Shown here: piece by piece, positions 10,521 through 19,900 of the stretch
Layout: each line of letters opens with the position of its first letter
How positions within the stretch are numbered: the first letter of the stretch is position 1
NCBI GenBank assembly: GCA_964036045.1
Contig: OZ038378.1
Span: 13,144,001-13,208,000 of the forward strand
Reading direction: 5' to 3'
DNA length: 64,000 bases
DNA from: Eutreptiella sp. 'Long Island Sound 2002'
Taxonomy: Eukaryota > Protista > Euglenida
The notes under the pieces: model-generated
The model's input: only the letters and a program-made list of their open reading frames with translations
Told to the model about the DNA's origin: nothing
Databases searched by the model: none
Made by a program: the position numbers and the translations under genes

Positions 10521-11129
10521 ACAAAGCCTAAAATTTGCTTCCTGTCAAGCTGATGGCCCACTGCTGCATTGTACCTGGCGGGTACCTGAATAGAAAGTTT
10601 GCCGGCCCATCAGGAGGGACATCACAGGCCTCTAGCACCGCTAATAACTCACAAAATTGACCGGAAATAGAAAGAATTTCCCGTGGATTTTGGGAGGGGG
10701 ACACTTGGGGAGGTGGGGGGTTGGTACGACCCCTCCTACCTGGTGTACCACCAGTATCAACCACATTACCAGCTCCCAGCTTCATCACACAGTTTGCTCC
10801 CGGCGACCACACCCCACCCTTTTTACTGGTTAATTCCAAAGCCCGCCACCTTCAAAAGGGAGGATCCTGACGAACAGTCAATGTGCACACCTGTTGGCTG
10901 TTGCTACAGCGCTGGAACAACAGCTTTGTGCTCCCCCCCAAACTGTGATTTCCGCAGAACAAACTTTTGCAGGTCTACAGGTTGCACTACTCCAGGTCAT
11001 GCATGTTTGAAAAGGCAAAGAACGGCCGTTACGGCAGCTTTTGTCTGATTTACGATACCCAATTCTAGTGTTGCTGCAGGAAATTGGGCCCCTTCCGCCT
11101 TTGTATTTTTTCCATGGGTTATGGTAGGG

Positions 11130-11300
11130 TTGGGGGTTCGAATTTGCACGAATTCGCAAGAATTTGAATTCGGTACGAATTCGCTCGAATTCGGAGGATA
11201 ATTTTAGAAACTCTCATTATGAATCCATTGAAATCGAATTTGCTTGAATTCGCATGATTTCAAATTCGGTATGAATTCGCTCGAATTCAAATTGAATTTG
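11130..11300. repeat. GAATTC-rich palindromic repeat cluster
   Basis: Seven GAATTC at 11150, 11166, 11177, 11187, 11246, 11273 and 11283. The 26-bp unit aattcggta(c/t)gaattcgctcgaattc occurs at 11167 and 11263. Confidence 0.85.
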
Positions 11301-11717
11301 AGGCGAATCTGCATCCCCAGGTTATGGGGGTGGAAACCTCTGCCTGCGGTGTGGCTATTTTGTGGGATGGGATCAATTACCCTCGGCTCAGTTTTTGCAG
11401 CCCGTGGAAGCTGGTTGGAGGGGCATCACTCCAGCGACAGTGTCAATTTTGACCACCTTTTTAATATGTTTGTGGCAAAAATGTTCTTCGAGCTCTCTTA
11501 TCAATTCCTTTGTGCAACCTGCTTGTCCATGCACCTGCAGCCTTGGACATTTACCTCCCCCCCTGCCTCTTTGTAAGTAGAATTAACAACAATGCACGCT
11601 AGTATGCTTGCTTACCACCACAACACTTGCACTGTCCCAGTCTGTTGTGTGATGTGTGACTTCTGATGGGCCACAGTTTGGTTTCATAATCAGCAGTGCT
11701 ATAAGGGCGGTATCAAT

Positions 11718-13400
11718 CTACACCAACCTATAACAATTTTGATCATTGTTTGAAAGAAAGGCTTGTCCTTTTTCCCAAGTATAGTTTACTGTTGACTGTT
11801 GCATATCTGACAGATTTGTTTGTTTAGTGTAAGTACCAAGGGGCACATGTCCAAGGAAAACAATATGCCAACCCTGCTGGTTGAGGAAACTTACAAAGGC
11901 GGGCGGCATCACTTGGTGCGAGCACTGATGCAGCAAACATTCAGCAGTCGACGTGTACAGAGTTCCAATCTTGGGTTTCCAAGGTGTATCCAGTGTTGAC
12001 GAGGTGGAATGGGACGTGGAGCTACTAGAGGACTGGAGCATTTTATAGTGGGAAGATCTGTTGGTAAAGGAAAGCAGTCTCTACGCCATGGCACAGACGG
12101 TAGGCATACCCAGCATGACCAAGGACAAGTTCATGGCGTCTTTTGAGCCGGGGGGGGGGGGGGGGGCGAAGGGGAAGGGAGGGAGGTTTTTGACTAGCCC
12201 CCCAGTCTTCATGGACCAAAATGCATCACAGTAGTGTTTTTTCCCTTTTTGTGCAGGGTTTTTGTTGTAAAAATGGATGGTTCGTATCCAATGGAAGGAT
12301 GTCTGCTGCCATTTCCTGGATGCTTCCTGTTGATTGTTATTGTTGGATGCTTGCTGCTTCCTGTAAATTCCTCAATGGTCCCTATTTAGTCTGGATGGCT
12401 GCTATTAATTCCTGGAATGTTGCTGTTAATTCCTGAAGGCTTCTTGTTAATTCTTGGAGCAGTGTGCAGCCCTTGCCCTAGCCCTGCACATTAAATGGTG
12501 GCCCAGAAGAGACAGAAAGAATTTGGTTGAATGCACCACATGCTGGTCAAAGCGCCCTCCTATGCTGCATTTCGCACATCCTTTTTAGCATTTCCTGACC
12601 TACCATCAAGGTTGCGGAAAAATAGAAGAGCGGGGACCAATTCCTTGCTTTCCATTGCATGGGGCGCAAGTGGAAGAAAAAAGCACTTGGCCATGAATGA
12701 GGGCTTGATCGTAAGGATGCATGGACAGACAACACCCATGAGGTGTGAGGGGGAAAATGACTGCGCACGGCCCAATGAAAGCACAATGCCCAACCGTGCC
12801 ATGAAGAAAAGAAAAAAATTGACCTCGACTCGAACCTTTTGCTTAATTGGAAAGGGGGGGAAGGGGGTTTTGTGGGAGGAGGGAGGGGGTTTTGCACACC
12901 CCCCCCCCCGGGTTTTAATTGTTCTAAAGACACCCTCGGGGGATACATAGGTAGAAAGGGGATGGTGACGGATTTGATGCTTTGGCCTTTATAGCCGTTG
13001 AGCTTGAATACGTTGCTTCCCCGACTGACAAGCACAAGCACATAGCGACCTTCGTGCAGGAAAGTCTACCAAGTACCAATGGATGTCAGTGTTGATAGGC
13101 ACCATTAAGGGAATACAACAGTAGCCTTTGAATCTGGAGGACTTGATGAATGAGTTGTTTGTGTAAAATGTCTAGGTGGCCACATGGAAATGTATCACCA
13201 AAAGGTGGCAAAGATTCAGCAAAGGCATAAGCGAGTTCACCTAGGCCGAAAGGAAAATTGCGGGGGATATTTTTTAAGTGCAAGGGTGCAAGCCATTGGG
13301 CAGCAAACAGTCCCGCGGGAAACTTGGTTGTGAGGGACGGCGTGGAGAATGCGAGGGTACATGAATTGAACTCATCTGTACAAGTGAAACAAGACAAAGC
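11718..13400 (-). pseudogene. Scattered exon-like relics of an unknown spliced gene or TE
   Basis: Protein-like segments bounded by splice-like sites, e.g. TPWKPKIGTLYTSTAECLLHQCSHQVMPPAF followed by GTAAGT, and acag|DEFNSCTLAFSTPSLTTKFPAGLFAAQWLAPLHLKNIPRNFPFGL|gt. They could not be assembled. Confidence 0.3.
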
Positions 13401-13479
13401 AACATAAAAAGTAGGTAGCAAATTAAGATCAAGTATCAGGTGTCTAACCCAGTACGTACCATTGATCATGAAACCCAAC

Positions 13480-13870
13480 CCCTATGCCCAGTACTCGTCC
13501 AAGCAAAAGCATCCAAGATAACCTCTGCCTCCTGTGCTCAGAACGGGAAAAGCGTCCAAGACAACCTGTGTCCAGTGCTCAGAACGCGGATGGGGTGGGG
13601 GGATGTATTCCCAAATTCTCAGTGCTCGGAGTTGGGGAAATTGTATCCTTCGATCAAACCCCCTGTGTTCAGTGCTCAGAGACGGGAGGTTTGCAAATTC
13701 TGGACAGAATTCGAATAGATAACCTTCGACTCATCACCGAAAAAAGCCCCACATCCGGTGCTCAGGGGGAAATTTGTATCCACCACTATGTCCCCTGGGA
13801 TTCAAATCCACCGCCTTTGATCGGTCGCCGCAAACCCTCCCACATCCAGTGCTTGGAATGGGGGAGATCG
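13480..13870. repeat. Degenerate array of ~7 CAGTGCTCAG-type motifs at ~40-90 bp spacing
   Basis: cagtactc, ctgtgctcag, cagtgctcag, cagtgctcgg, cagtgctcag, cggtgctcag and cagtgcttgg, mostly preceded by a cc/ccc-rich pyrimidine stretch. Confidence 0.6.
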
Positions 13871-14148
13871 TATCACAAATAACTTCCCCCCTTCTCAGCA
13901 GCGGCATCACAAAAGTGGGTTGTTCTATTAAGGCTGTCTGGGTAGAACAACCAGTGTCCAATACCATGTCTGTTCGGTGACCCAGGCTGATGGTTGCAGT
14001 TCCACAAATCCATAAAAGACCGGTGCAGTCCAAAATAGGTTGTAGGAAGCTGCAGTGCACCCCCAATACAACACAACGGCTCGTTGTGATGTGTGCAATA
14101 TTCGCGCGCATGATGCAACGCAATACACCGCAGCTTCGTTGCCGAACC

Positions 14149-15261
14149 TCACACTGCTGACTGCAACTCGCACTGCAGCGCCGCAAGCGCAGCTTGCAGG
14201 CTCTCAGCCGCACCTGCGTGCCCAGCCGTGACCCGCTCCACAAGCGCCTCAACTGCCTGGAATGCCTCCGTGTTCACGGAGCGCGGCACAAGCTCACCAG
14301 ACGCAACCCGAGGAAAGAGGCTTGCGGGATCCGGGCTCCTGTAGTCGGTATCCCGGAGCGCCGCCAGGCTCTGCACGTCGACCCAGCAAGCACCCACACT
14401 CTCAAAGTCCGGCACCGACTTAAGCTCCAGGGATGCCTCGTCCCGGGGCTGGGCAAGCAGCACCATGCGGGGCGTGCCCCGGGTCACCGTAAGGCGGAGC
14501 ACCCCGGTGACGATCACCGCGATTCCCGCCTCCTCCCTGCATTCCCGCTCCGCCGCCGCGACAAAGCTTTCGCCGGCATCGAGCCGGCCCGCTGGCAGCC
14601 AATACCCCGGCGTCCCACTTGCACAGAGGCCCGCGGGCTCGTTGACCAGTAGGAACTGCCCCGTGGGTGCCCGGCACACAACCCACGCAAACGCGGCGAA
14701 TCGAGGGAACGCAGGCTCTCGGAGCTCCACAGGGCCGTGCGCATGGTTCAAGTGCACCGGCAGCGGCGTCCGGTCGCCGCTGCCGCAGACGGGACACGGT
14801 GCGACGACGTTGCGCTCCGCGGCGTGCCAAAGCGACACGTGCGTGCTGAGGGCCTCTGCGGTCAACCCGGGCATACCACAGTGCGGGCACGAAAATCTGC
14901 CGCCGGAGGTGATCTGAGTCATGACCTGGAGGAGCGCCTCCCGCACGGCGTCTTCGGAACCGGTCACCATACGCGCCCCTGCGGCGAAGCACTCGAGGCG
15001 CAGCCGGACGTCTACCACAGCCGTCCGGCTCAACACAATGCTAAAGCACCGGCGCCTCCTCCCCAACTCTGCCAGCAGGGGCCAGCAGGTGTTGGCATCG
15101 GAGGTACCAAGCGACATGACCGCGGCGACCGGGACCCCTGCAGCGACAATGCCCAGCGCATGCGCAGTGGAGTCAGTCACTTCAGCTCGCCACCCCTTCG
15201 GGGCGCTCCTTGCCACGCGCGCCGCACGCTCCCCACGGTCCAGGATAAGCAGGCAGTGCAT
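14149..15261 (-). CDS. Nudix hydrolase with an N-terminal pseudo-receiver (CheY-like) domain and tandem C2H2 (Di19/KCMF1-like) zinc fingers, 370 aa, intronless
   Basis: First ATG at 15261 inside the 407-aa ORF; GC-rich and uninterrupted. Complete Nudix box G-RLDAG-E-SFVAAAE-RECREEAGI (GX5EX7REUXEEXGU). Fingers CPHC-x12-H-x4-H and CPVC-x10-H-x4-H. The N-terminus follows the receiver pattern (CLLILD...GWRAEVTDSTAHAL...WPLLAEL...FSIVLS...LECFAAGARMV). Confidence 0.9.
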   Translation of the reverse strand: MHCLLILDRGERAARVARSAPKGWRAEVTDSTAHALGIVAAGVPVAAVMSLGTSDANTCWPLLAELGRRRRCFSIVLSRTAVVDVRLRLECFAAGARMVTGSEDAVREALLQVMTQITSGGRFSCPHCGMPGLTAEALSTHVSLWHAAERNVVAPCPVCGSGDRTPLPVHLNHAHGPVELREPAFPRFAAFAWVVCRAPTGQFLLVNEPAGLCASGTPGYWLPAGRLDAGESFVAAAERECREEAGIAVIVTGVLRLTVTRGTPRMVLLAQPRDEASLELKSVPDFESVGACWVDVQSLAALRDTDYRSPDPASLFPRVASGELVPRSVNTEAFQAVEALVERVTAGHAGAAESLQAALAALQCELQSAV

Positions 15262-16639
15262 AGCTGGTGTGCTTGCACAGGAATGCTGCGGCTGGCTGGT
15301 GCCGTGACAGGCACAAGACAGGCCTGAAACAGCGGAGAACGATGTATGCAGCAGCAGTTGGTTGTAGCACACAAGCTATTTAGGGCAATGCATGCATTAG
15401 AGGGGCAGTGCAATCCTTCCAGAAATGGTGGCTGGGGTTTACGTGGTGAAAAGTGAGCCCAGGTAGGACCTATGTAGTGCAATGACCAAAGCCACATTCG
15501 GAGCAGCACTTTTGCTGAAACCTAGCGTCCCTTTAGACCCCCAGCCCCAGCAAAAAGTGGGCGCTACCCCAAAATTTGTAGAAAAAGATCGTGACTAGGA
15601 TTGCTGATGACCCAAAAACTGTGTGTGCTATCAATTGAAATCATAGCGGTGCATGCATATTTCCTGCCCAAAGGGTTGGAGCTGCAGATGCATTTGAAAA
15701 AAGATTTTTCAGCGAATCTAGTACGCCTCCATGTGCTGCAATGTGCAGACATGCCACCTTCTTGGACGTGCTAGGGTGCTGGGCTGCCGAACAGAACTTC
15801 TTTTTTCACAATGAATATTGTGATGTTTACTGTGGGAAAGGGAGGGGAGGCAGCACTGCAGGAAGCGTAGTAATGGTGCAATTTACAGGGGCACGATTCT
15901 CACTCAATTTTTCACATTGAAATCAATGCGAGTTCTAACGGCAGTGCACAGGTGCGCAGCAGACCATGGACACGTCCAAAACGGAACTGCAGGTCGACGT
16001 CAGTTTCTTTCTTTGTTTACTTGCTCGAGTACTGAAATGTTGCTGTGTGTTTGTGTGTGCACCTCTGCCTTTGTCGCGATTCTCCTTGCCTCCAGCTCAT
16101 TGTGTGCATTCCCACTTAAACAGCAAAACATTTGAGCTGCTGCTTCCATGCACGAATCCATCAATGGCCATTATTTCTTGCCTGTTTCGTGTGACGCTGT
16201 CTGACAGTTTTGCGTGGACGGTGTGCACTCATCATGCCCCACAGTCAAACCCACCGCCATCTCATCAGTCTGTGTTTTCAGCAGTTTTACGAGAAAGCTG
16301 CTATGACCAGGTACAGCCTCACCATGTACCAAAATGGGTAAGTCTGAATAGTTTGAGACACCCAAGCAGCCAATGTAATGTGGCTGGCTGGTGTGCAGGG
16401 GTTTTTGCACATACCATGGCAAAAATTGTGCGCTGTGCAGCATAGACCCATGGACAACCGGCGACCCCACCACCTGTTGGTGGCATGAATATTGAGGCTG
16501 TGTTGATGAATTGCAACTAGCTGGCGGCAGGAATGCAAGCGGTTCTCCGGAAATCCCAAAATTAGGTACCCGCAGGCAACGGTGTCCCCACTCCCCCACC
16601 GCCAGCACAGACAGCGGCACGCCACAAAGGCATGTCCAC

Positions 16640-16960
16640 GACACGCCCACACCACGTTTGTGCAATGGGTGCAGTGCAATATGACTCCCTCCCCCTACCA
16701 CCTGTGTTGGGAGTGCAGGTCTCTTGGTTGCTCACTGTCATGGTCATGGTGTCCGTACAACTACCACTCGGTGTGGGTGTGGTGGATGGTGTCAATGTGT
16801 TCGCTACACTGGCCGACGCTGTGTGGCTGGCTGTGCAACTTACTGTACATCACAGTGTGGAGTTGCGACTTCACGTCAGGTTGGGAGCTGCTGTAACTAA
16901 TGGTATCATCGATGGATGGCAAAATGGTGTGTGACGGTGTAGGGCTCACCATTGGGGTAC
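16640..16960 (-). pseudogene. Degraded Thr/Ser-alternating (mucin/surface-protein-like) coding relic
   Basis: Minus-strand frames give SPTPSHT... and CTVSCTASHTASASVANTLTPSTTPTPSGSCTDTMTMTVS, with stops. Confidence 0.25.
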
Positions 16961-19900
16961 AGGTGCAGGACAACAGGACAGCATGCCTCAGCCATGGCCT
17001 CAAGGGCAACACACCAGACAGTTACCCTACCCCCCCCCCTTGCGCAAACAACGGTAAAATTTCAAAATCCAAAAAAAATTTGATGGAAACAACACCTCGG
17101 GTTGTTTGGACAAAGGCGTTGTCTGCACGCACCCTCAGAAGACACATGCAGTGACAGGAGAAAGTACATCATTGACACAGGGACATTCATGTCCATGGAG
17201 GCCCATGCAATGCCCCCCCCACCCCCTCTTGCGCCAACAACGCCCATGTCCAAACAACGCGAGGTGCTGTTTCCGTCATTTTTGGAACCATTGATTCGGT
17301 GATTCCATTTTCTCATTTGGCGTGAAGGTCTAGGTTTCTCTGTGGTTTTGGGGCTGGGGATGTTTGTCTTTTACAGAGATTGTTTGCTGTGTTGCGTGTC
17401 ATCAGAGCTGGGTTCATCCGAACTGCATTAGGTTCCAATTTCTTGCACCTGTACCTAGCCTGCCCCCAAGCATATGCAACAGCCTCATATGTGGTATACT
17501 TTTGGCAAAGGTCTCACAGCCGAGCACTTTTAACATTTGAATGTTTTTCTGCATCCTGCAGTGCCCCAATTCTGGTCCTTGTCAACGAATTGCGAACCGT
17601 ACTTGGGAGTGCTTTTGTCACATTGTTTTACGTGTGTGTCGTCAATTGATTAAATGGGACCAGGTCCTGCAGCATTCATATCCCCATTTGATGCAAGCAG
17701 CATCAGCAATGCAGCCACGCATCACCACCTTGCCTATGCAGCTCCTAGACCCTTTGCACTCAAATGGAAACTCTGGGTGCAGGGTTGTGCAAACTGCGGA
17801 CCACTGTGGCCAAGCTGTCTCGGGACACACTGGGCAGACACACAAAGTGAGTGACAGGGCAGCATACCCAAATCCAAGCCAACCACTTCGAGGACATGAT
17901 GTTCCACCCACTCTGCGTCATTTTTGTTCAATTTTGTGTGTTTTGCATTCTGTCCACACTGTCATTGGTGTGTTGTTGACAGACGCATCTTTCTGAAATC
18001 ACTCAGTTGCAACAGTTACCACCTCCCCCTAGAAGGCCTATTGATTTGAGAGATGACACATCTTACAGGCAAGGGCACACAAACACTGGGCACCGGTGGC
18101 ATGCAAAAATGCAAGGCAGCAGGCAGCCCTGCAGGAGGGCTGATCTGTGCCTGTTAACCAAGAAATGAAATGGGGAACCAAGAGCCACATGAGCAACAGG
18201 ATCAGCTCAACTAACAAACGTAAGCTGTGCCCGTTCAGACCCTAACAAAATGTTGCAGACAAGGAGGTACTGCTAAGATCAAACTCAGGGCTTGAAGGAA
18301 CATGCAGATTAGGCATTGGAGGGGTGCTAGATGTCATAAGGTGGATTTTCTTTTGCAATGAATATTCAGAGGTGGCAAGTACAAGCCCCTGGCAGTTTTA
18401 ATCAACATCTCCAAATGTTCACTGTGAGCGTTGACCCAACATGCAACATGCCCCCATGTTCAAATGTCGCCAAAAATACATGACATGACAACTCAGAAAA
18501 ACTTCAAAAAATCAAACCCCCAACACGCAGAACAGGCACCAATTAGCACCGCAATGTGCCGTATAGCCAATCAATCGCGTGTCATGGACCACAAAGGACC
18601 TCAATGTACTTGGTTTGCCAAAAGCTGGGTCCAGGGCTTCTCAGGGTACTACCTGGGGGAAGACCCGTGTTGAACAAAACCAAAACGTTGCAAAACCACA
18701 GCCCAAATTTACATCCCTAAGATCTGGCATGCTTGGAGAGCGGATATGTCAGAACAGAGGGTGTGCCATATACATACACACAGAAAATCTTGCATGCGTG
18801 CGGCCCTGTTGAAGCCATGGCTAGTGTCTATTGCTGCACCCACATCCTCACAACCAATTTCCAGGTCATGAAACGTTGGACAACTGCTGGACTCAACATT
18901 GGAGTGGGCGGTCAAACCTTGGTTGGCCTATAGCCGTCACTGTGCCACGTCCCATTCCACTTTCTTCTTCTATATGGACCCCTATGATGGGGGGGTAGTA
19001 CGCCCCATCAACAATGTGTGTGCAAATTGCCAATTGCACCAGAGTGCACGGTTGAAAACCAGCCATTTTTGACTGCCCCCCAACGGAGCACCCCCCCAAC
19101 CTCCAGAGAGTAACCCGACCTACATCTAGCAAGCACACCCCGGCGTTGTGCATCCCTTGGAACACGGGGGAAATGAATATGCTTGGTTCCGTGCAATTCT
19201 ACATGCATGGAGGCCCATGTGTTGAGACTGCTTGAAAGCGGCCAAAATTGATCATTGCTGAAAACACTCCTACTATATTGGGTTGAAAGACTCTAAATAC
19301 AACATGGACCATTGTTTGATGCCGTTTCCATTCATATAATCCAATTTCAAATTCGAATTCATTTACTTTTTTCTGCATAAAACCGGATTGTCAGATTTCG
19401 GCCATTTCGCCAAAAAGGTCGAATATGAACCCTGTACACCTCTGTATGCTTTGCGCGGATGTACCTTTGGTTCATCTCTCTTCTCTGTGCCCGTAGTTAT
19501 CAAAATGGCAGAACCACTAACACTACTCGCTCAAAAAATCTGCCAATTTTGCAACTATGAGTGTTTTTAAACTAGCCTGCTCAAAACGTGGGTCTCCCCT
19601 GAAGTGTTACTTTTGTATCCCTAAGCTTCAATGGGTTATGAACAAAATACATCTGAGTTCCTTGGGCCCCGAGGCATGGGAAAGGGCACTTGGTTGGCAC
19701 TGTGAAGGCGCACGAGTCACTCTGTGAGGTGCTAGGCTCCTAATGGTGGGGATACGTCTCGTTTACCATCTGACGTACAACCAAGCAGATCGGCCGACAC
19801 CATTCACACGAACAATATAGGCTGTGGCATGCTCCTAAAGGCATGCCAAAGGCAGGCGATAGACCATAAGGTCCATGTATCGCAATTTGCAAGCAAGACG

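Follow-up and report, generated by a model that had tools for sequence, protein, structure and literature searches.

What kind of protein is encoded by a GC-rich reading frame in Eutreptiella sp. that appears to join a receiver-like N-terminal domain, a pair of zinc fingers and a Nudix hydrolase in one polypeptide, and what could such a combination do? The frame lies on the minus strand of a 64,000-nucleotide stretch of genomic DNA (hereafter the window), and a preliminary description made from the sequence alone had proposed that it encodes a signal-gated hydrolase. Here we combined protein family searches, structure prediction and profile comparisons with an alignment of 35 sequences of the family to examine each part of the protein in turn.

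A single-copy gene and its protist family

The start codon of the frame is the ATG at 15261-15259 and its TGA stop is at 14151-14149, giving a protein of 370 amino acids. The ORF is nested in a GTG-started frame of 407 amino acids that contains no in-frame ATG upstream. Homologues of 366-400 amino acids align over its whole length, and because of this end-to-end alignment no intron is needed in 14149-15261. The ORF listing, Pfam and the alignment together confirm what had been read from the sequence, namely an intact intronless ORF with a complete Nudix box and two C2H2 fingers (Table 1). GC content is 0.60 in the 2-kb bin that holds the ORF (14001-16000) versus ~0.49 in the flanks, and the rise is confined to the ORF. 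Pfam matched neither the short flanking ORFs nor the antisense ORFs inside 14149-15261, which are shadows of the GC-rich frame, and Rfam found nothing over 11000-18500. The gene is single-copy in the 2.28-Gb assembly.

Table 1. Position of the gene and its encoded features in the window, with example loci of canonical receivers elsewhere in the genome.
Feature	Coordinates	Strand	Evidence
Complete single-exon CDS, 370 codons + TGA	14149..15261	-	ORF listing, end-to-end homologue alignment, identical protein on another assembly's contig
Pseudo-receiver domain, residues 1-118, (beta-alpha)5	14908..15261	-	AlphaFold2, Foldseek, VIA, hhalign with shuffle control, column counts
Di19-type double zinc finger (DZB), residues 121-178	14728..14901	-	Pfam PF05605, KCMF1 match, ligand alignment
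Finger 1, C125-H146	14824-14889	-	Zinc ligands C125, C128, H141, H146
Finger 2, C156-H175	14737-14796	-	Zinc ligands C156, C159, H170, H175
Nudix hydrolase domain, residues 186-300	14362..14706	-	Pfam PF00293, NUDT18 match, Foldseek
Nudix box, residues 225-247, GRLDAGESFVAAAERECREEAGI	14521..14589	-	Regex in 35/35 members, codons read directly
Conserved C-terminal helical extension, residues 301-370, DYRSPDP motif	14152..14361	-	Alignment, full-length model
Example receiver loci L005/L007	C9:55978925-55979725
Example receiver loci L009/L013	C23:7583762-7584631

A word-index protein search recovered 53 relatives, ~35 of them full-length at 40-53% identity. Those with a taxon label come from dinoflagellates (MGD, Biecheleria cincta, Effrenium voratum and Symbiodinium natans, the last annotated 'ndx-1'), the haptophyte Prymnesium parvum and the telonemid Telonema subtile. 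Many other relatives are MMETSP or Trinity transcripts, and this wealth of transcriptome ORFs shows that other protists transcribe the family. All are uncharacterised and carry generic source names (NudJ, MutT, YjhB, hypothetical). Maximum-likelihood analysis groups the window protein with P0004 and P0035, two unlabelled environmental sequences (support 95/96), and this group sits within the clade to which the dinoflagellate and haptophyte members belong.

Among the Pfam-checked matches from 1.8 billion representatives, the N-terminal domain was found only in company with Di19 and Nudix domains, the exceptions being short or partial proteins and P0065. This last protein (921 amino acids, from an ENA metagenome contig) carries a GlcNAc 2-epimerase domain in addition to the receiver-like, Di19 and Nudix unit; either the fusion is genuine or gene models have been merged. 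Literature searches on Di19 with Nudix, and on receiver domains with Nudix, found no paper on the three-part architecture. This agrees with the earlier view that no characterised protein is built in this way, and the homologues that had been thought possible in other protists are those of the dinoflagellates, haptophyte and telonemid. The superfamilies are known ones, but their combination in this domain architecture is new, and it is widespread among marine protists.

The sole other record of the identical protein is a genomic contig of another assembly. When metagenome and metatranscriptome contigs were searched for exact 30-nt matches, no transcript of the window gene was returned. The contig of P0004, the nearest relative, comes from a metagenome assembly and shows no recognisable spliced leader. 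A live gene is indicated by the intact frame, by the local rise in GC and by the family-wide invariant residues, of which 40 of 40 are retained.

A receiver fold that has lost its phosphorylation site

Modelled with AlphaFold2 from the alignment of 35 sequences, residues 1-122 reached a mean pLDDT of 95.8 and show the element order beta1-alpha1-beta2-alpha2-beta3-alpha3-beta4-alpha4-beta5-alpha5. When the model was compared with the PDB using Foldseek, all of the matches listed were response-regulator receivers or receiver-derived proteins (TM ~0.70-0.80, E down to 1.7e-5). VIA-align against representatives placed receivers in 49 of the top 50 positions (Z 13.8-16.5), the best match being DrrB (Z 16.5, rmsd 1.9 Å over 111 residues). 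The ESM Atlas yielded no usable match.

Single-protein sequence methods saw nothing in this domain. Pfam did not report PF00072 for the window protein at E≤10, no receiver model was among the 25 most-matched of 57 Pfam families for the 35 members at the same threshold, and a PDB sequence search with residues 1-122 gave no match at E≤10. We therefore turned to profile comparison, aligning the family N-domain alignment with 12 canonical receivers from the same genome using hhalign. The probability was 86-91%, with a score of 40.4 over 91-107 columns; 30 column shuffles scored at most 15.2 and the reversed profile 9.0. By fold and by remote homology, the latter visible only when profile is compared with profile, residues 1-118 are therefore a receiver. 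The preliminary description had anticipated a CheY-like receiver fold over residues ~1-115, which the mean pLDDT, the receiver matches and the hhalign score all bear out, and its placement of the strands and helices (ILD in beta1, AVMSL in beta3, FSIVLS in beta4 and CFAAGA at the end of alpha4) agrees with the DSSP assignment of the model.

A phmmer search of 1.8 billion representatives with the N-terminal domain (window 14896-15261, minus strand) returned only its own family, plus giant repeat proteins. The latter are drawn by an Ala/Val/Thr-rich stretch, residues 26-64, with E-values down to 1e-16 and many matching stretches in each protein. We rejected them as a compositional artefact; the one that was scanned (528 amino acids) contains bacterial cadherin/Ig repeats. 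The stretch is thus an artefact hazard for automated annotation.

The residues on which receiver phosphorylation depends are changed in the family. The phospho-acceptor Asp (Asp57-equivalent), at the end of beta3, aligns by hhalign to Leu51, a column occupied by Leu in 24 of the 35 sequences, by Val in 4 and by Asp in 2. The acidic pair after beta1 corresponds to L7/D8 in the window protein, columns 7 and 8 being mostly L and A among the 35, and the Lys of beta5 aligns to Ser102, with Lys absent from the six commonest residues in columns 100-102 of the same alignment. The Thr-Ala of beta4 pairs with T80-A81, just downstream of S78, and Ser/Thr at the end of this strand is mostly kept (S78 in 22/35, T80 in 20/35). 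Judged from these columns, the domain is a true pseudo-receiver throughout the family. The earlier claim that both Asp and Lys are missing therefore stands (Leu51 and Ser102 by profile alignment), but its placement of a Ser at the Asp position does not, Ser50 lying one residue off; neither residue is acidic. Two of the 35 homologues, P0036 (which reads AAVLDAD) and one other, have an Asp in the phospho-acceptor column, perhaps left over from an ancestor that was a true receiver.

Conservation within the N-terminal domain peaks at beta4-alpha4-beta5 (F73, R88, G95, A96 and M98, with R88 and G95 invariant), the signalling face of true receivers. A further conserved motif, SCWP (residues 58-61), opens helix alpha3 next to what was once the active site, its C59 being present in 24/35.

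In the same genome, at least 51 canonical receiver domains score above the Pfam cut-off. Open frames of 800-1190 amino acids enclose many of them, and some frames hold two. Near-identical receivers occur as neighbouring pairs (C25:21680247 and 21720886; C5:6915474 and 6950704; C4:25937427 and 25940655; C24:20881767 and 20909599), and the picture suggests a large, recently duplicated two-component repertoire. The best-scoring receivers are on small contigs (L003 on G000:C1090, L004 on C339, L006 on C568) and resemble bacterial OmpR-/NtrC-type response regulators; these three may be bacterial contigs within the assembly.

An intact Di19 finger pair joined to a complete Nudix hydrolase

Residues 122-176 match Pfam zf-Di19 (PF05605) with E 1.6e-8 and 35.1 bits against a cut-off of 27.5, and the eight zinc ligands of the two C2H2 fingers are invariant in 35 sequences. 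A PDB sequence search identified KCMF1 as the closest solved Di19 relative (E 1.7e-6), its F-(S/T)-C-P-x-C-G ... C-P-(V/I)-C pattern aligning with the window protein. The finger pair resembles the DZB modules of KCMF1, plant Di19 proteins and the RNF114 family in its above-cut-off zf-Di19 match and in having two C2H2 fingers at equal spacing; whereas theirs are fused to ZZ, RING or UIM modules, that of the window protein is fused to an enzyme.

In KCMF1 the ZZ-DZB unit is a substrate receptor of the UBR4 complex. RNF166 and RNF114 bind MARylated targets via Di19 (PMC10632493). In an AlphaFold3 model of RNF114, the ADP moiety of NAD+ lies in a pocket of the Di19 domain whose contacts are W181, G182 and R198, an Arg contacts the diphosphate, and mutants designed from the model changed binding (PMC12583694). 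Mono-ADP-ribose binding is the sole biochemical function reported for a Di19 domain, and it implies a different substrate logic from that of a nucleotide hydrolase. In the window protein no UIM follows the fingers, the Di19 region running straight into the Nudix domain in both the Pfam matches and the full-length model and leaving no space for one, and a MARUbe-binding module of the RNF114 type is therefore unlikely. A conserved H-G-P-x-E-x-R-E-P segment joins finger 2 to the Nudix fold, and Arg181, after finger 2, is invariant; the residues right after the CxxC of finger 2 vary within the family. The Di19 region is acidic (net charge -1 in the window protein, family mean -3.2, pI ~6.1), which counts against binding of nucleic acid or RNA and hence against a role in decapping.

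The Nudix domain is recognised by Pfam NUDIX (PF00293) over residues 193-302 (E 1.5e-12, 48.1 bits against a cut-off of 21.1). Its box, G225-x5-E231-x7-R239-E240-C-R-E243-E244-A-G246-I247, is complete and fits the consensus GX5EX7REUXEEXGU, which a regular expression recovered in 35/35 homologues; the first U position is a small residue (C, A or T). The best match in a PDB sequence search was human NUDT18 (E 2e-7), with W-L-P-A-G-R and ES..A.W stretches in common. Foldseek with the Nudix part gave more than 500 matches at E≤0.001, and all 50 of the 50 listed are Nudix proteins. At the top stood E. coli YmfB/NudJ, NUDT18 and Deinococcus DR1025 (E 5e-9 to 6e-8, 22-26% identity), with RppH, NUDT12 and NudC at ranks 20-45.

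Among the curated NCBIfam equivalogs the best score was 21.6 bits against a cut-off of 200. Because no substrate-specific curated model was reached, the substrate class rests on the nearest neighbours. The substrates of NUDT18, NudJ and DR1025 are nucleoside di- and triphosphates, and those of NUDT18 include oxidised purine diphosphates. The window protein is like NUDT18 (MTH3), C. elegans NDX-1, NudJ/YmfB and DR1025 in having a complete Nudix box, and these are its best sequence or structure matches; it is unlike them in that they have no receiver or Di19 domain, and identity in the structural alignments is 24-26%.

Membership of three other Nudix subgroups was rejected. ADP-ribose pyrophosphatases are marked by a conserved Pro ~16 residues past the box; the window protein has Pro264, but the column is variable and gapped across the family. 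NADH diphosphatases (NudC/NUDT12) carry SQPWPFPxS after the box, where the window protein reads AVIVTGVLRLTVTRGTPRMVLLAQP. The Dcp2 decapping enzymes were set aside, with no box A domain (PF05026) matched in Pfam at E≤1. The Tyr of ApnA hydrolases and the CoA motif are absent or not conserved. The suggestion of a decapping or alarmone-like substrate thus found no support: the neighbours are NUDT18, NudJ/YmfB and DR1025, the Dcp2 domain and the NudC/NUDT12 motif are missing, and the Di19 region is acidic. NudC and NUDT12 do share a general layout, in which a non-catalytic N-domain precedes a zinc element and then the Nudix fold; their N-domain is a different one, however, and they have a single Cys4 zinc motif rather than two C2H2 fingers, and we read the likeness as analogy, not homology.

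A second Nudix exon in the genome (L002:1504-1767, plus strand; G000:C1:143760681-143760950) is 49% identical to residues 221-302, the KSVPD-ES-GA-W motif included. No receiver-like or Di19 coding sequence lies within 1.5 kb of it, and it is probably a plainer NUDT18-type paralogue.

The protein ends in three helices (311-321, 332-345 and 351-369), modelled with pLDDT above 90 save for the last 10 residues, and R308 and T345 of this extension are invariant. The full-length model has a pLDDT of 95.7 and a pTM of 0.92, implying confident relative placement of all parts, and helix alpha5 (103-117) reaches finger 1 within a few residues. The three domains and the C-terminal extension are predicted to pack as one compact body. 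As there is no N-terminal extension ahead of the first strand, the protein is probably cytosolic. Models, profiles and Pfam thus support the architecture originally proposed, a receiver-fold N-terminal domain without Asp and Lys, an intact Di19 pair and a catalytically complete Nudix domain.

Possible functions of the three-part protein

On balance, we favour the view that the protein works as a NUDT18/NudJ/DR1025-type Nudix pyrophosphohydrolase, in which the pseudo-receiver and fingers form a phosphorylation-independent regulatory or partner-binding unit. The Nudix part, with all of the metal-binding and catalytic residues of its box, would most likely dephosphorylate substrates of the nucleoside di-/triphosphate type, possibly damaged (oxidised) purine nucleotides. 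The alpha4-beta5 face, which is conserved, and the remodelled pocket may be the surfaces by which the pseudo-receiver and fingers adjust the hydrolase or determine its location, and such control would involve no His-Asp phosphorelay. We infer both the substrate class and the regulation of activity by the N-terminal module. Gating of the Nudix enzyme by the N-terminal domain is plausible; the pseudo-receiver could also be purely structural.

Pseudo-receivers are known from other proteins. The plant PRR/TOC1 proteins, the N-domains of cyanobacterial KaiA and CikA, HP1043 and RitR likewise have a receiver fold, have lost phospho-acceptor chemistry and act without phosphorylation, and structures of HP1043 and RitR are among the fold matches of the window domain (Foldseek, VIA). 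The window protein differs from them in showing no sequence kinship beyond that with receivers in general, and in having a Nudix output reached through a zinc-finger connector, an output on which we found no paper.

A constitutive housekeeping hydrolase, with the pseudo-receiver and fingers as a structural or oligomerisation scaffold that plays no signalling role, seems to us unlikely, if well worth considering. It would suit the rigid single body that the pTM of 0.92 suggests, the loss of every phosphorylation residue from the N-terminal domain and an architecture fixed family-wide. Against this, the N-terminal domain has been kept over deep divergence, with the surface-type R88 invariant and SCWP conserved, which exceeds the needs of a scaffold, and the paralogous Nudix core in the same genome does without such a module within 1.5 kb.

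More speculatively, the pseudo-receiver and Di19 fingers might sense a ligand or the redox state and so switch a Nudix enzyme that sanitises nucleotides or processes ADP-ribose, a possibility that we hold to be rather unlikely. In its redox version, Cys59 of SCWP, at the mouth of the dead phosphorylation pocket, would sense oxidation and turn on the removal of oxidised nucleotides. Such sensing would be likened to that of RitR, which is Cys-based, and of the pseudo-receivers of KaiA and CikA, which bind quinone. In its ADP-ribose version, the Di19 fingers would read ADP-ribose for a Nudix eraser.

The ADP-ribose idea can also be put as a reader-eraser explanation of the whole protein, attractive in the light of the Di19 papers, in which the fingers would bind an ADP-ribosyl or adenine-nucleotide moiety and hand it to the Nudix domain, which would cut the pyrophosphate much as NUDT16 acts on protein ADP-ribosylation. 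The direct fusion of fingers to a pyrophosphohydrolase and the invariant Arg181 past finger 2 would fit, as would the binding reports for the Di19 domains of RNF114 and RNF166 and the modelled ADP pocket of RNF114 with its mutants (PMC12583694). We nonetheless think this improbable, since the closest solved Di19 relative is KCMF1 rather than a member of the RNF114 family and there is no UIM. Moreover, the residues after the CxxC of finger 2 are variable, a conserved Trp-Gly loop of the RNF114 kind is not evident in the family alignment, and the Nudix domain is NUDT18/NudJ-like, with a downstream Pro264 that is not conserved.

Still more doubtful is an RNA 5'-end enzyme, with fingers that bind RNA and a Nudix domain that removes m7G, NAD or other caps. 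The acidic Di19 region, the lack of a Dcp2 box A match and the missing SQPWPFPxS all speak against it, and NUDT18-type enzymes are not known to act in decapping. In its favour are the loosely analogous layout of NudC/NUDT12, the low positions of RppH, NUDT12 and NudC in the Foldseek list, and the DNA binding reported for plant Di19 proteins. Finally, a dead or unexpressed gene copy, which would account for the lack of a transcript of the exact sequence in the collections searched, is hardly credible for a single-copy gene with an intact frame, all 40 of 40 family-invariant residues and a GC rise confined to its ORF.

In the literature that we found, no Nudix hydrolase is described as the output of a receiver-type domain, and no Di19 pair as fused to any enzyme. 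The family shows, in a compact and confidently modelled form, how eukaryotes have reused a signalling domain of bacterial type that has lost phosphorylation. With at least 51 canonical receivers retained, the genome allows live and dead versions to be set side by side. It could also be used to test whether Di19 fingers generally bind nucleotides. Marine protists of ecological importance, Symbiodiniaceae and Prymnesium among them, possess members of the family. If the sensor or reader proposal were true, it would represent an undescribed eukaryotic signalling logic common to dinoflagellates, haptophytes, telonemids and the organism of the window.
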